A stretch of DNA of 63,995 nucleotides, counting the filler, from Lenisia limosa (lineage: Eukaryota > Protista > Breviatea), in the NCBI GenBank assembly GCA_001655205.1. It is 10 parts of 10 records of this genome, joined end to end, with 100 filler letters (N's around TTAATTAATTAA, not from the genome) between each part and the next. Parts side by side here need not be neighbours in the genome. Positions count along the whole stretch, not along the records: positions 38,254 to 46,642 come from LPNZ01010634.1; 9 more parts are not named here. One strand, given 5' to 3'. Numbering within the stretch: the first letter of the stretch is position 1; the number at the start of each line of letters is the position of its first letter. The notes under the pieces are model-generated. The model made no database searches and was not told where the DNA came from. It worked only from the letters and a program-made list of their open reading frames with translations. Below, in pieces: positions 38,024 through 46,642 of this stretch. Both the position numbers and the translations under genes were made by a program.

Positions 38024-38297
38024 TTGTATTGTAGTTTCTTTTAGTGGTGTAGTAGTTTTTTGTCATTTTGCTTGCAGTTTTATGTGTATATTTTTGATGG
38101 TTTACTTTCCCTTGGCCATGAATGTTGAAGAACCGTGTTAGTATTCGGGTATANNNNNNNNNNNNNNNNNNNNNNNNNNNNNNNNNNNNNNNNNNNNTTA
38201 ATTAATTAANNNNNNNNNNNNNNNNNNNNNNNNNNNNNNNNNNNNNNNNNNNNTATACATATCAAATAATATGCTCGTGCGCCAAAAACCCGTTGTT

Positions 38298-39400
38298 TTA
38301 GGGATAAAGAAAGGCAAAAAGAGAAAAGCGCTCATGACCACCAGACCGAACTTGGGCTAAATCTATAAGCTTTTTGGAACAGCATGGGTTCCGAAACAGG
38401 TTTTTTTTTAACAATTGAAAGTGAACAACACACATCCCTGAAAACATCAAGATTTTCTCTTTTGGGAGAGATTCTTCTTCTGCATCGCAACAGCAGATGG
38501 GTGTTGAGCAATTCGATGTAGTCAAATGTTATATACTATTTAAAGAAAAACCCGATTTAGTCAACCTTGAGGTGAGTGAGCTAGCATCCAAGTCAATGCC
38601 AAAATCTTTCTTTGGGCATTTTTCGAATTCCTTTTCAATATTAATATTGAAAAACACTCATCTCTCTTTGAAGCGCTTTCTCTCAATAGTTGACAAAAGC
38701 CAACTTTTCCTCAATACCTTCTGTCTTTGCCTTTTCCAGGACTTTCCAAATAGCCACTGCTTCAGGACACCGTATAATAAGAAGATTTTTAAAAAAACTT
38801 TATTAAATGTAGCTTCCTTTGGTTCAATTGCTTCGAATTGCACATTGATTATAATGGGCTGCAGTGTAAGCGTAAAACGCTATGTTTCATAACTAACTTC
38901 AAGAACTTTCACTGAAAAAGGATCCAAAGCCTTCTTTCCGTGTTAGGAAACGGCATTTGCTTTGCGTTTGCGAATAAGAACTCCCACTGAGGACAGTCCA
39001 AGCATGAATTTCGTCATCATGGAACAAAAATGTTATACCATGCGGAAGATGAGGATTTCTAGATGATATTATTAGAGTGGCTCACAAACGTTTCACCTTA
39101 CCTCAGCGGGTTTGACTTGTTGAAAACAACATCAGCAAAGCAGTTGGTCCTTCGCTCCTCATCATAATCCTCAAGGAATCGGCATTAAAGCGGAAATGAG
39201 TGCCCTTCCCTTCAACCCACCCACATCCAGAAGGGTGACAGTGCCGGAATAGACATTGTGGAAAAGTTTTGAATGAGCCTCCCGAATGGGTTTGGAACAT
39301 TGTCTGAAAATCTATTCGAAAAAGGCAGGGCTTGTATGGCGGGACCAGCTTTGGACGCTATGTGAGGGGGAAGGGAGTGAAAGAACGAGGGGAGTCATAC
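38298..39400 (-). CDS. Unresolved multi-exon gene(s) divergent from the PKA regulatory subunit
   Basis: Clear GTAAGG..TAG intron near 39060-39101 and several 30-60 codon open stretches; no single model closed. Confidence 0.3.
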
Positions 39401-39829
39401 AACTTGGGAAAAAGTTCTTTTAATCAAATCGCTTACATTTTAAGAACCTCAGAAGAGCAGAGGAAGGATGGGAGAACAGCTACCAAGAAGAATATGAGGT
39501 AATGTGGTAAAAATAAGGCCTGAATAAATATCAAGGCTCGAAAATGACCATATTTTGACGTTAGACTATGTCGATATTCGACAAATGTTGGCAGTGTCCC
39601 TTCCCCGTCTTTGCCGTTCTTCCTTCTTTAATAGCAATTCAAAAGAAAGAAGGAAAGAAAAGCAGCAGTAATTATCAGTCAGTTTCCGCTTTTACCAGCT
39701 TCAGAGGCTTTGCCGCCTGGGGTGGCGAAGCGTAGGAGTTTGTTCAGAGTGGTTTTGATCAACCACAGGCACACAGGATCAACATCAAAACACAATCAAA
39801 ACATTGTCAAAACATCAAAACTGCAAAAT

Positions 39830-40994
39830 ATGTCAATCTGTCAATACTTGGCTGAAAAAAGTGTTCATACTCTTTTAAAGAGTGCTCTAATCGAAGTTTG
39901 TCTTCACAAACCTGAAGACCCAATTGCATTTTTGGCACAGCATCTTGCTGCTTTAAATTCAAGTAAATCAAAACCACAAAGAAAGCGAAGAGGTGCTGTC
40001 AGTGCTGAACCTCTGAGATATGATGCGTCTGTTGTTTCTCCAGTAGTTATTCCTAAAGATGCTGAAACTGCAGCAAGGTTAAGACAGGTATTGTTCTTAT
40101 CAATTATGGTTTGTCATTAAGTAGGAATGTTTTATTCTCACATTTGGATGAATCTCAGCAGCAAGCTGTTTTTGATGCATTATTTGAGTGCAGTTTTTGT
40201 AAGAATGAAACAGTTATTTCCCAGGGAGATGAAGGTGATAATTTTTATATTGTTGAAGAAGGAACGCTGAATATTTTTGTAAAGAGACCTGGAACCCCAG
40301 CTGAAAAAGTAATGACAGTTTCGGATGGAGACTTTTTTGGGGAGTTGGCTTTAATATACGGATGCCCAAGAGCAGCTACTGTGATTGCTGTTTCAGAAGT
40401 TAAACTCTGGGCAATTGATAGAATCACTTATCGATCGATATTAATGTTTATGATTGATTTTTAATCAGGGAGACAACTATGAGAAAGCGCAAAATGTATG
40501 AGGGATGTTTAAGTCAAGTTCCCATTTTTAGTTTGCTTTTTGTCCTTATTTGAAAATCTTGATAAATATGAGAGATCTATTATTGCTGACGCAGTAGTTG
40601 AAGTATTGTTTCGTTGTTCATAAGGATTCATTTCAACCAAATGATATTATTGTTCAAGAAGGTGATTCAGGAGAGGAGTTCTATATTATTCTAAAAGGCG
40701 AAGTAACAGTAACTCAAGCAAATGGCGTGGAGGTTGGACATTTAAAAGAGATGGAGTTTTTTATTAAGGAACTTATTTGCTATTTTGGAGAGATATCTTT
40801 ACTCACTGCCAAGCCAAGAGTAGCTTCAGTAAATGCTTTAACGAGTGTTCAGTGCATCAAGCTTGACAGAGAAAGGGTTTTTCACTTTGAATAATTTGTT
40901 TACAAGATTACTAGGTCCTGTTGAGGACATCCTTCGAAGAAATATGGCAGATTATCGGAATTATCTCAATGAACCCTCAGTTGTTGGGCCCTGA
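39830..40994 (+). CDS. PKAR: cAMP-dependent protein kinase regulatory subunit; six introns of 22-26 nt (40088-40113, 40446-40468, 40531-40552, 40603-40624, 40756-40779, 40877-40898)
   Basis: D/D domain (YLAEKSVHTLLK..CLHKPEDPIAFL), pseudosubstrate RRGAVSAE, two cNMP domains with FGELALIYGCPRAATV and FGEISLLTAKPRVASV. Confidence 0.97.
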
Positions 40995-42470
40995 GCAAAG
41001 GTGTATTATTTTTGTCTTCGCTTTAGGCATGCATTTATATTTAGATTGTGAGTAATCTGGAGCTGGAACATGGGGTCGTAGAATTGGGAAATTTGAGGTA
41101 GTTCAGTTCTTTTTTTGATTTTGGAAAAAAAATAAAAAAAATGTACTTAAAAAGACCCTCCAGCGTAATTCCGCAGGAATAGTATTGAGTAGAAAAATGT
41201 AAAAATGCCCATTTTCCCGACTTCTGAGGTTGTTCTTAGACGTTTTGTGCTTCGCGTTTTTCACCTCTTTGGGATTTAAACACAATATTTGAGGAATTTG
41301 AAAAATTTAAGTGACTATGCACAACCAACACCAACTCATTGGAAAACTTTTCGCACCGTAAGCAACTGAAAGATACATTATTTGAATTGCTAATATCGAG
41401 AAAAAATCCAAAAGAGCCCATTTAACTTGAACTGTAATATTTTTAGCACCGCAGAAAGCGTGCCCCCCCCTCCCACCTTCATCCTCCTCTGAGAACCCAC
41501 CTCCTGTTAGTGGGTCAAAAAGGAATGGCATAGTTACTCTTTTTTGGGTACAAGAGTTATCGGATCATAGAGAGTATCCGAAATCAAGTATGAATAATGT
41601 TTCATCAAAGAGCCATTGATGGTGAAAAAAAATAATGTCAGTGCCTGTGTACTATATCACCCACGGACAACTTGAGTTTTCCATAAAAAAATCATCATAA
41701 ACCCTATTTTCCTTTTGTTTTCGAAAGTAATTTCAATCTTAATCAAATGATAAAATGACTACTTCAATTATTGTGGGGTCAAAACCAAATCAAATCCCTA
41801 AGCTGTATATTTACGGTCCAAATACTGTCATAAAATCGTTATAAAAGGCCACATTCAAGGAATAAATGGAAACTGTCCGGGAAAGTTCACCCTTGTAGAC
41901 AGTGATTTTTTTGAGCATTTTCCTCTCAAAATTCACCATTATATAGCCAAAGCAAAGGGGAACAACCAATTACTCCGATGGGTGCAAATTTTTGCTTCTT
42001 AACACTAAAAGAGGGTAAGATTCAGAAAAAAATCCAGTGAAAAGGCAAAAGAGGGACCCCCGGGAGACCAAATTCACGAAAATTTGATATTTGCTCAAAA
42101 TTGAAAAAAAAAAAAGTTGGGGAACATTAGAAGGTCCATTTCTCTATGTATCTGTCGAAGCAGATTTTTTAAAATAACACTAACATTGGCCTATAAAAGG
42201 TGACAACTTCAAGCTGTCCGGGAGTTTTTGATGTATCCGGTGAAATTGAATGATGTCCGGAGCGGAGCTTTGAGGACCCACATTACATAGGAAAATTTCA
42301 GTCAAATTTGGAAATAAAGTGATTATAACTCAAGGCTACCATTATATTTTTTTTACTAGAGGTTTTCAGGGTCTGCAAATCCAAATTACATGTCAAAAGT
42401 AGTTTAAGTGGGCAAAATGTACCTAAACCCTCAAAAAACCGACTTTTTAGGAAATACCTTGTGTCAATAT

Positions 42471-42543
42471 TGAAATACCTTCAGGCAAGAAAATCTCAAA
42501 ATAGATAATTTTACTTTCTAAAATTCGGTCATCTGAGGGGTTT
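42471..42543 (+). repeat. Direct repeat, copy 1 (copy 2 at 43416-43480)
   Basis: TGAAATACCTTCAGGCAAGAAAATCTCAAAATAGATAATTTTACTTTC..GGTCATCTGAGGGGTTT occurs twice with one short indel. Confidence 0.85.
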
Positions 42544-42749
42544 CCGGCGGGTTTCCAAAACTTTTTTCGGNNNNNNNNNNNNNNNNNNNNNNNNNGGTTT
42601 CCCCACCTGTCGGAGTTTTTCATCCCCACCTAGTATTAGAATGTTTGTTTGTTGTTTGTATGTAATTGTGTAATTATATGTAAGCTGTAAATATCTACAT
42701 TCTTGTGGTTATAAACATCCTACGTAACCAACAATATGAAAGGTGACAT

Positions 42750-43400
42750 TGAGTTTCAAAAGTTGATCGTGTCTTCAATGTTGTCAACTATACTTTTGCC
42801 CTTTTCCTCCGAGCTTGATACCCACTCTTCCCGTTCTCCACCCGCAACCATTTTGAATATCCTAAATAGTAAACAGGAAATAGAAAAGAATGCAACAGGT
42901 TAGCGCAAAAGGGTTGATGAGCTCACGTTAATTGGGAAGAATATTAAGGCTATCTAAAGTCGAAAAGACCAGAATTTGCCAGAACCATATAGTAAATAGG
43001 ACTTGTTTACAACGCGAAGAGAGGCAAAGGTGAAATGTTGAAGCAGTTGAAAAACACACTCAGAAGACTTAGTACATCTAGCCCAGTAGAATGAACTCCA
43101 ATTTCTCTTACAGAATGAGCGGGGGATTCTCTTGCACTTGCTTGAAATTTGAGAACGCGAAAAAGTCGGTTTGACTACTTTCCGGGTCTGGAACCAGATA
43201 GGAGGACCCGGCAGCGGATCGGTAAATACTACACATATAATGAAAAAATACTAGGACATGCTACCAAGTGGGTTTTGGGGTAATTTATTACACAGACGGG
43301 CTGTAAAAGCTTGGAGTGGACTGGTTGTTGAGCTGTTTTTGCTTTTGCTGCTGTCTAAGCTTCTTTTGTTATGGGGTCAAAGTGAAGAGTCAAGGTCGTC
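42750..43400 (-). CDS. Putative multi-exon hypothetical protein
   Basis: Open segments SLDSSKSKNSSTTSPLQAFTARLC.., VFTDPLPGPPIWFQTRKVVKP.., ..GEREEWVSSSEEKGKSIVDNIEDTINF stop with GT-AG flanks. Confidence 0.3.
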
Positions 43401-44063
43401 GTGATTATAAATATTTGAAATACCTTCAGGCAAGAAAATCTCAAAATAGATAATTTTACTTTCGGTCATCTGAGGGGTTTGAAGCCTGGGTAACCAGTTT
43501 CACTTAAAATGCTATTTAAATATAATCTAGCCCCAAAGACACAGGAGAACGCCCCTAGATAGAGAATCACAACACTATTTCGAAAAGACCACTCTACTCT
43601 AAGCGCCTTCTTACCTTTATTTACATGATTCAAAGTAAAGATTGTTGAGTTGAGTTATACCGCACTTCTCACAATATTCTTGAGAATAAGAAAGAGGCAT
43701 ATGAATACAATTTTTGTGATAATAAGCAAGAATACAAATCAGGCAAATAAACCACTTTTATACCGTTTCCTGGGGAGCTACTTAGGGGGTCATGGCCCTG
43801 GAAACAATAATAATGCTCTTTGCATAATTGATTGAAAATATATTTAAGATAAATTCATCTTCTTTCCCATGACCGGCTTTAACTACTCCGACTAGTTTTC
43901 AGACTTTCTTCAGACTATCTCTTTGCCCTCCATGCCTCCATGCCAAGGGCGGCCAAAACGTCAACACATTTGTTATGCCATCTGTCTCGCATCAGAATTG
44001 CACAAGAGCATCAGCAAACCCCAGTTGAAAGATTGAAACCATTAATCCAGTAATTGTATTCTA

Positions 44064-44643
44064 CTACCCTCTGATCAAATTTGATTGAAACCGCCTTCGA
44101 ATATCAAACAGCTCAATAAATAATTGATCGATTTGTCTTGACTTCGACCCTAAAATAAAATGAACAATAAGACCAGAAAACTGAATATACTCCTCAAAAA
44201 GGGCAGAAAGGGTCCACCCCTGGTGTTTTCTCAACAGCCCAACAATACAACCAGTGCGATGCTTATCAATACCAATCAAGAACTTTTCCTTTATTACAGT
44301 GGATCAAAATAGGATGAAACAGCTGATTACTTAATATTTCAAATATTTCCTTGATTACTCTATAATTCATAAAAATAAAAGGTTCCAAAGTTATTGAATA
44401 AACCTTACTTTATTTCCCATTAGAGGAAATTGAAACACCCTAATCTGAGAAAATTTAAAGGCTGACAGCAATGATTCATCATACTTCTCAGGACATAAAT
44501 AACTTGATCAACAACGCAATATACATAATTGATTTTATTGATAGTTCTTTAATAAACCCAAAATGATTTTTGCAGGGGAACCCAGAACGGTAAATACCTT
44601 CTGTAACTATTCCAAAATTTGGTGGTATAGAGTAGTACATCAT
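44064..44643 (-). CDS. SIW14: Siw14/PFA-DSP family phosphatase; introns 44503-44524, 44386-44408, 44262-44283, 44150-44173
   Basis: PPNFGIVTEGIYRSGFP, YLCPE, GNKEPF, catalytic HCNKGKHRTGC, WTLSALFEEY, DQLFIELFD. Confidence 0.95.
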
Positions 44644-45549
44644 GAGCCTGTCATGAGCTGATCATGGCTTTCAATGGCTTTCTAACACCTGCAGAAAAGG
44701 CTAGGAGGTGTTTTGTATATAAACATGGGGGTCACTGGTCCGCCTTTTTCGGATGTTGAATTGGACAGGCTCGCAACGTCATCGAATCGGAATTTTTCCA
44801 AACTTCTTCATTCGCACAGAGTAATTATTGTCTCAATTGCTTAAATATTGGGTATCTCAACTCAAGGGGGCGCCGATATCGATATAGTGACGATCTCCGA
44901 TCTCCGTCAATGCGCGACCTCAACAATAATATTTGGGTGTAAATGTGTAAATGATATTATACGATTACTGAGGATGAAAATATTTTTTTTGTTTGCATTG
45001 CTGCATGTACTGTTGTCTTTTTGTTTTCCCATTTTTCTTCCTCATATGATGTCACAAGGTCACAAGCGTGCAAGATCACAATAACATTTGCTTATAAAGG
45101 TTCTTCTTTTATATTTTCACTGTTAGAGGTAGCTAACAGTATGTATTATTTGTTGTTCTTTTAACGTCGTCAAGTAAGTCAGAACCGGGTGGCTTGCATG
45201 CAATACCGTGAGTGATGCGTCAGTCCCTCACTGTCTCAATCGGCATGAATAGTAGGTTCCAATAAGCGTGATGCTAAATTCCGAATTCAGCTAATAATCT
45301 CACGGAAACAATCAATCAAAATTATATATTTGTCCGCCCGAACAATAGTTAAGAAAAATTAAGCAGACTCCCGCTTTAAACGGCTTTGGCCAGAAACCAC
45401 CTATTTTTTTTTCTCATCTATTACATGATATACATTATGATGCATGTCATTATGATTTGATATGAAACATACATAGTATATGATATATTGTCAAGTATTC
45501 AGAGGATACTACAATAATAGTTCATGATTTTTTTAGGAATTTACGCATA

Positions 45550-46642
45550 GTAAAATGCCATTGCTTTCAGACTACCTTACTCTCAAGGCACAACGAGTAA
45601 ACGGGACTCCATCCGCCCTTAAATAGACAAATCTCAGTTCAGTTCAGTTCCGTGAATTTGTTGTCAAAATAAAAAATGTTAGAACAAATCTTAGCTATAG
45701 TTTAATGTTTACTAGGTTGATTTTGGTGCATTTTGGCAGGTTTTATCATGGTTTTAGTCAAGGAAAAAGTGAAAATCAAAACCGACACAGTTTCTCAAAA
45801 CCGACACGGTTTAGGCGCTTGAGCATATACATATCATATGATATATGATATATAGATATGATATACTACATATACTATACTTCTTCTGAGCTTCACGCTC
45901 GAACTGCTGATAAAATTGAGCAATCGGTTCGCAGACTACTTCTGAGGCTAAGTAGTTATACACACTTGTGGCCATTCATCTTTCCACAAAAACAAGAGAA
46001 CCCCACATACATGTACCTTTCAAATATTCTTGATCCATACACTATCTTGATGCTTCTATTATTCTTGCGGCTAAGGCCTCCATCGTTCAGGCAACATGAA
46101 ATGCGCGAATACCCGCCCGCTGCATAATGTCTTGGTTGACAGACCTCGAGTTAACCTCACGGCAATGTGACCAGATCCTTCTCCCACTGTTGAAGAGCCT
46201 GCCCATTTGAAGCACTTTCTCGGGCTTGACAGTTTAATATTGAGGGTTTCTTCTCTTCACCCATAATCCTTCTCGCAAGAGCGATTTTTTGATAATACAA
46301 TTGGATCTGTTTCTTGACAATCTTGGAATCTACTTTCACTCCCATCTACACAGTTAAAGTGTAAGTTGAAATATTACATACAATATTATACATGTACNNN
46401 NNNNNNNTTACGTATAATAATTGGATGTTTATCGATTTCAGAAAGAGCAATGCAACAAATCCCCCCACTCACTGCAATCATTCTTTGGACTGCTAATTTG
46501 CCCTCCTTGATTGTCGAGGGACCAGTTTTTCTTCCATGGAAAATTATGCTTTCGTCACTCTTTTGCTCTATTCTCCCTTTCTGAAGTTTCACCGCGTCAT
46601 TAATGGTCGATAGAGGTACTTTGATCGCATATCTGCTTGGCA
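45550..46642 (-). CDS. 5'-partial multi-exon hypothetical protein
   Basis: Exons ..KLAVQRMIA | MGVKVDSKIVKKQIQLYYQKIALARRI..KDLVTLP with GTGAGT/GTGAGG donors. Confidence 0.45.

Follow-up and report, generated by a model that had tools for sequence, protein, structure and literature searches.

We propose, at a probability of about 0.8, that a 23-nt segment in a phosphatase gene of Lenisia limosa is a constitutive spliceosomal intron that begins with GT and ends with TG, and that it is one instance of a rule for 3′ splice sites that this organism has relaxed. The RNA, as we infer, would be joined at 44409^44385 by the spliceosome, so that GGAAATAAA would stand directly on GAACCTTTT in the mRNA. 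This interpretation is supported by four independent lines of evidence, namely homology of the encoded protein, the coordinates of a curated profile, the positions of orthologous introns, and recurrence of the same ending in a second gene. All positions count along the window, the whole stretch of DNA presented (63,995 nt, filler included). The piece of it analyzed here spans 38,254-46,642 (~8.4 kb) and comes from record LPNZ01010634.1 of assembly GCA_001655205.1.

The segment interrupts a PFA-DSP/Siw14-type phosphatase gene, the parts of which are listed in Table 1 together with those of the second gene. The phosphatase gene opens with an ATG at 44643 and closes with a TAG at 44066..44064, immediately after which stands a second TAG. 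In structure searches with a profile containing the exon peptides, the matches included AtPFA-DSP1 (7mok, E 1e-65) and yeast Siw14 (6byf, E 5e-59). The catalytic loop HCNKGKHRTG, which conforms to the CX5R loop HCxxGxHRTG, is intact and spans exons 3 and 4. A second functional element lies at the segment itself: the WPD loop of AtPFA-DSP1 contacts the substrate and includes Gly118, Asn119, and Lys120 (PMC9038691), and these three residues correspond to the GNK of the GNKEPF motif. A representative search with the phosphatase returned distant relatives only, at identities of up to 66%.

Table 1. Positions of the two genes, their introns, the phosphatase exons, and the competing phosphatase intron, counted along the window.
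Feature	Positions	Strand	Description	Further observation
PKA regulatory-subunit (PKA-R) gene	39830..40994	+	7 exons, 6 introns of 22-26 nt, 341 aa	TGA stop
PKA-R intron 1	40088..40113	+	26 nt, GT...GGTTTG	no indel at junction
PKA-R intron 2	40446..40468	+	23 nt, GT-AG	
PKA-R intron 3	40531..40552	+	22 nt, GT...TATTTG, phase 1	matches GT-AG introns of loci L052 and L054
PKA-R intron 4	40603..40624	+	22 nt, GT-AG	
PKA-R intron 5	40756..40779	+	24 nt, GT...TATTTG	PF00027 contiguous across junction
PKA-R intron 6	40877..40898	+	22 nt, GT...AATTTG	
PFA-DSP/Siw14-type phosphatase gene	44064..44643	-	5 exons, 4 introns, 162 aa	PF03162
Phosphatase exon 1	44525..44643	-	119 nt	PF03162 positions 4-36
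Phosphatase intron 1	44503..44524	-	22 nt, GT-AG, phase 2, SI|IYLCPE	Marchantia intron at same position and phase
Phosphatase exon 2	44409..44502	-	94 nt, ending ...LMGNK	
Phosphatase intron 2	44386..44408	-	23 nt, GTAAGG...CTTTG, phase 0, GNK|EPF	in-frame TAA
Phosphatase exon 3	44284..44385	-	102 nt, EPFIFMNY...HCNKGK	residues 4-34 = PF03162 positions 72-102
Phosphatase intron 3	44262..44283	-	22 nt, GT-AG, phase 0, KGK|HRTG	position common to Marchantia and Acanthamoeba
Phosphatase exon 4	44174..44261	-	88 nt	PF03162 positions 103-131
Phosphatase intron 4	44150..44173	-	24 nt, GT-AG, phase 1	8 residues skipped by homologues
Phosphatase exon 5, with stop codon	44064..44149	-		
Rival phosphatase intron (considered below)	44360..44403	-	44 nt, GT-AG, in frame	donor AG|GTTTAT (5 nt downstream), acceptor TATAG

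The 23-nt string has a single occurrence, on the minus strand at 44408..44386. A first-pass annotation had described it as a GT-TG segment with an in-frame stop and no AG near its end, and both its coordinates and its letters proved exact. The segment begins with GTAAGG at 44408, where the GT stands in a donor-like context, as at the 5′ end of U2-type introns, and it finishes with CTTTG in place of the terminal AG of that class. Its sole AG lies at positions 4-5, and it holds no usable AG acceptor. Were the segment retained, the frame would read GNKVRFIQ and then run into a TAA stop. A U12-type intron was also considered and rejected, as the donor GTAAGG is not RTATCCTT and the branch motif TCCTTAAC is absent.

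Exact removal of the 23 nt restores the protein. Only then does the motif GNKEPF become contiguous, as the annotation had claimed, and the resulting model scores 199.4 bits, without a gap over 149 columns, against an HMM of 53 homologues from the representative search, with which two splice models were scored. The coordinates of Pfam PF03162 point the same way. Its positions 37-71 are exactly the 31 residues of exon 2 plus a split codon and EPF, and the TG junction is therefore free of gaps. A deletion of 23 nt preserves G-N-K-E-P in only three registers (AG..TT, GT..TG, and TA..GG); none of them ends in AG, and just one starts with GT. The motif GT-N16-20-TTTG by itself is within chance, being found at 47 places in the 8.4-kb piece, both strands counted. 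The significance of the segment therefore rests on its context, that is, on reading frame, gapless homology, and orthologous intron position.

Exact spliced maps were computed for the PFA-DSP genomic loci of Marchantia polymorpha (L081) and Acanthamoeba castellanii (L082), and both carry a phase-0 GT-AG intron at this point. It measures 191 nt at IEGNK|EPFVDI in Marchantia and 118 nt at INGNK|EPFVEI in Acanthamoeba. The comparison with orthologues that the annotation had suggested thus yielded introns of identical position and phase that end in AG, whereas the Lenisia intron is 23 nt long and ends in TG. Two more of the gene's intron positions recur in the orthologues, that of intron 1 (SV|IYLCPE in the orthologue) in Marchantia and that of intron 3 in both species; intron 4 has no counterpart in either of these orthologues. 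Because a land plant and an amoebozoan have a phase-0 intron at GNK|EPF, the 23-nt segment is, to judge by its position, the local copy of an ancient spliceosomal intron that has shrunk to the local size class, with TG replacing AG. More generally, the three PFA-DSP intron positions (IYLCPE, GNK|EPF, and KGK|HRTG) probably date to early eukaryotes.

The same ending recurs in the second gene, which lies on the opposite strand and encodes a PKA regulatory subunit with a Dpy-30/RIIa-like N-terminus, an RRGAVS inhibitor site, and two cNMP-binding domains. Aligned with five homologues that were intron-free or translated, the spliced PKA-R model showed no indel at any of its six junctions, and the indel-free 341-aa protein requires that all four TTTG introns be removed. 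A metagenome scan for close relatives of PKA-R gave best matches of 43-62% identity, too distant to count as close relatives in which intron ends could be compared gene by gene, and the loci found were used to compare intron positions. In two of them, the unrelated environmental loci L052 (GC 30%) and L054 (GC 54%), a GT-AG intron shares the position and phase of PKA-R intron 3, which falls between ...IF and NLDKYER. PKA-R intron 5 is unlike the other nine introns in that its length is a multiple of 3 and it has no in-frame stop; if retained, it would insert 8 residues immediately ahead of the YFGE in the second cNMP-binding domain without truncating the protein. Taken together, the two genes contain no in-frame TAA, TAG, or TGA in 503 codons, and all 21 of their Gln codons are CAA or CAG, which suggests that the genetic code is standard-like. 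Such a code would be uncommon for a ciliate with introns of this size, and it speaks against the ciliate lineages that read UAR as Gln.

Our intron sample therefore consists of ten introns from two genes, half of which have non-AG ends (one of four in the phosphatase, four of six in PKA-R), and all five of these ends are TTTG. This is the proportion that the annotation had given; its claim that the other three phosphatase introns are 22-24 nt GT-AG introns likewise stood, at 22, 22, and 24 nt. Had AG decayed at random, the ends should vary; five identical TTTG ends do not fit that pattern. The ten introns are otherwise much alike. They are 22-26 nt long and 41-64% T, their donors are weak beyond the GT, and each has an adenosine 5-8 nt from its 3′ end, which is likely the branch point. 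None of the five TTTG introns offers an in-frame AG acceptor for the same donor. A rule framed post hoc, by which the acceptor is the first AG or TG that ends at least 22 nt from the donor, fits all ten acceptors, compared with 5 of 10 for the first AG alone. We offer this distance rule for acceptor choice as a hypothesis based on ten introns.

Two runs of one 2016 study contain the stretch, a DNA run (X1) and a poly(A) RNA run (X2), and X1 has been assembled independently by Logan. A single 1370-nt contig of X1 covers 43434-44800 at a depth of 43.3, with no differing letters, no gaps, and no variant contig. TTTG is therefore present in the reads and is not an artefact of the assembler or of polishing, although the DNA run is probably from the same sample as the genome assembly and so probably not independent of it.

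In the poly(A) RNA run, a share of 0.66 of the sampled 31-mers of 44050-44660 was present. The expected share is 0.64 with all four introns spliced, 0.60 with the 44-nt intron of Table 1, 0.73 with only intron 2 retained, and 1.0 for unspliced RNA or DNA. Because the observed share is so far from 1.0, the phosphatase gene is expressed and mostly spliced in poly(A) RNA; the share does not separate the splice models, among which log-likelihoods differ by less than 1. Contigs of both runs were placed on 39700-44800 at a likeness of at least 90%, a threshold that probably excluded RNA contigs with gaps of 22-24 nt; a filter also makes holes in the placement uninformative. A contig of two exons with a 23-nt gap, for example, would be ~89.5% alike. 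No RNA contig was colinear on the phosphatase gene, and the sole RNA contig placed covers an intron-free stretch within PKA-R exon 1. Since colinear contigs would have passed placement, the RNA contigs that carry the phosphatase 31-mers are probably spliced and fall below 90% likeness. Most of the PKA-R gene (39871-41067) had zero placed depth in both the DNA and the RNA run, although the DNA run should contain it; we ascribe this to the filter, which removes conserved sequence resembling human DNA, rather than to the biology.

Protein collections were searched for the spliced protein of the species itself with a profile of two homologues and the five exon peptides (lengths 83-264 aa), in which the own protein would score 281 bits and rank third, as well as with a junction profile (lengths 36-114 aa) and with PKA-R exon 2. 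None of these searches of the protein collections recovered it, no match exceeding 67% identity, because Lenisia limosa is absent from those collections.

The competing explanation that deserves most attention is that the phosphatase gene is spliced, solely or mainly, with the 44-nt GT-AG intron, the TG being unused or minor. The predicted junction (44404^44359) would join ...AAAGTAAG to AGTAATC, and the protein would read GNK-V-RVIKE. This is the precise form of the annotation's statement that use of the next AG deletes EPFIFMNY: it does so, by way of a donor that lies 5 nt further downstream. The 44-nt intron has canonical ends, preserves the frame, and is the only GT-AG alternative; its protein still scores 174.5 bits, its predicted 31-mer share is compatible with the observed 0.66, and human TG acceptors are always at most 28 nt from an AG, as would be the case here with an AG 26 nt downstream. 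However, that score is 25 bits below that of the 23-nt model, and the 7 profile columns it deletes are EPF and four more residues of the WPD loop. The 44-nt intron would also shift both splice sites off the position conserved in Marchantia and Acanthamoeba, lie far beyond the 22-26 nt class of all ten introns, and pass over the piece's best donor, GTAAG. For the four TTTG introns of PKA-R, an in-frame AG is lacking altogether, so that TG has to be used there in any case. We consider splicing by the 44-nt intron improbable. Removal of the TTTG segments by other than spliceosomal means, such as IES-like DNA elimination in an expressed nucleus with the assembly representing the unprocessed form, appears less probable again. 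The size class of the tiny introns is ciliate-like, ciliates excise short DNA segments, and the intergenic DNA here is repeat-rich, unlike that of typical streamlined somatic genomes. Yet DNA depth is flat across the phosphatase gene, at 43.3 in a single contig, and the segments match the adjoining GT-AG introns in size, U-richness, and position class, with two of them at ancient spliceosomal intron positions. Flanking direct repeats are 1 nt at most, and ciliate IESs in particular were rejected as candidates because the segments have GT/TG ends and are not TA-bounded, and because DNA depth is neither reduced nor split.

Two further explanations were weighed. If the gene were a decaying or non-functional copy in which the acceptor had mutated from AG to TG, the segment would be retained and transcripts would end at the in-frame TAA. 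Retention does give a premature stop, and no junction read was seen among RNA contigs at ≥90% likeness, a set from which gapped contigs are probably excluded. By contrast, the catalytic motifs (HCNKGKHRTG and the WPD loop) and the whole reading frame are intact after removal, phosphatase exons are present in poly(A) RNA, and TTTG also ends four introns of the equally intact neighboring PKA-R gene; the annotation had already argued against decay, and the integrity of both genes and the uniformity of the five ends bear it out. Decay is accordingly very unlikely in our view. Least likely of all is an error or heterogeneity in sequence or assembly that conceals a true TTAG. A single base separates TTTG from TTAG, and the DNA run is probably the assembly's own. 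However, the independently assembled Logan contig repeats the TTTG without a difference or a variant, and the ending is found in five separate introns on both strands. The annotation's case against sequencing error therefore holds as far as contigs show, and the genomic TTAG that it named as grounds for abandoning a GT-TG intron was not found, the DNA run (probably of the assembly's own sample) showing TTTG.

The surroundings of the two genes are sparse. Across the rest of the 8.4-kb piece, Rfam, Pfam applied to ten other ORFs, and a protein atlas revealed no additional genes and no RNAs, which leaves a density of only two genes in 8.4 kb. An interspersed repeat occupies 41581-42264, with a summed k-mer depth of ~10,000 in the DNA run vs. 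~43 in the unique flanks, and with many variant contigs and internal joints in that run. An exact 49-nt direct repeat stands at 42470-42518 and 43415-43463, at a spacing of 945 nt; by eye, the likeness resumes past a 7-nt indel into ...GGTCATCTGAGGGGTTT, and they probably represent one small dispersed element in two copies. A low-complexity tract of degenerate ATATGATATA-like units lies at 45810-45885, upstream of the region of the phosphatase gene. For an organism whose introns are so tiny, the genome, with its repeat and its two genes in 8.4 kb, appears rich in repeats and poor in genes.

Under our preferred interpretation of a GT-TG intron, the segment would be removed from the pre-mRNA at a UG 3′ splice site rather than at an AG. 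In spliceosome structures, the first and last G of the intron pair with each other, and the branch adenosine is touched by the A at -2. Here the last G would keep its usual contact with the first, and U would replace A at -2. The 3′ end could be set mainly by distance: it would fall at the first A/U-G that lies ~22 nt from the donor and follows the branch point by a few nucleotides, the choice being made by a spliceosome that works mainly by geometry and accepts either U or A at -2. Because the branch point is so close to the 3′ end, second-step fidelity (control of the Prp18/Slu7/Prp22 type) may be relaxed. A broader claim is one toward which we lean only slightly: that U2-type introns of this organism are not bound by the AG rule, that a large share of its tiny introns, about half of those sampled, is constitutively spliced at UG, with the 3′ site chosen by a distance ruler, and that even introns passed down from the eukaryotic ancestor have come under this regime.

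Few features of spliceosomal introns are as constant as the terminal AG. If confirmed, a lineage with UG at the end of half of its introns, ancient copies included, would be a natural experiment on how the 3′ end is recognized in the second step, and on the extent to which distance, as opposed to sequence, guides it. The parts played by Prp18, Slu7, Prp22, and U2AF35 would become directly testable through their loss or change in this genome. There would also be a practical consequence, as gene predictors and splice-aware mappers, where they demand AG, would mis-annotate about half of the introns and produce frameshifted or truncated models.

Tiny introns are described from ciliates. Introns of 20-33 nt in Paramecium and 21-29 nt in Nyctotherus are bounded by GT-AG (PMC2633312), those of Loxodes average 19 nt (PMC11441545), and those of other litostome ciliates are reported to be GT-AG bounded. 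The Lenisia introns resemble them in their size class of 22-26 nt, their GT donor, their U/A-rich body, and a likely branch A a few nucleotides from the 3′ end, and also in that retention would shift the frame or introduce an in-frame stop (with the exception of PKA-R intron 5). By contrast, ciliate tiny introns have AG acceptors as described, whereas here five of ten are ordinary GT-AG introns and five end in UG.

Diplonemids, euglenids, Amoebophrya, and Fritillaria have longer introns, with ends that are diverse or transposon-derived or with termini that are base-paired. The likeness to Lenisia is that many of their introns lack GT-AG (PMC12621601, PMC7789003). The difference is that Lenisia departs only at position -2 of the acceptor, in introns whose positions are ancient.

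Human TG 3′ splice sites are rare alternatives that lie within 28 nt of an AG and are never the sole acceptor, with ~0.01% of candidate TGs used (Szafranski et al. 2007, PMC2374985). They are comparable to the sites described here in that U2-type GT introns are ligated at TG, with a pyrimidine at -3 and an AG no more than 28 nt downstream (at +26 in the phosphatase gene). However, in five of our ten introns, TG is the only acceptor that preserves the frame with the same donor; the AG 26 nt downstream of the phosphatase TG is out of frame with that donor and needs another one.

A mechanistic parallel, with which the distance rule agrees, comes from yeast, which can dispense with Prp18 and Slu7 if the branch point lies close to the 3′ end, and where Prp18 acts as a ruler that enforces at least 10 nt, its loss activating branch-proximal non-YAG sites, including B-G ends (PMC10711555). 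Yeast lacking Prp18 is a mutant with low-level aberrant junctions, whereas in Lenisia such junctions would be the normal constitutive state. If the broader claim above is right, this organism would be a natural counterpart of the relaxed second-step fidelity known only from yeast prp18 mutants. No precedent was found in the literature on GT-TG or other non-AG acceptors in ciliates and other protists. Tiny introns were already known, and what would be new here is tiny spliceosomal introns with a constitutive UG acceptor.
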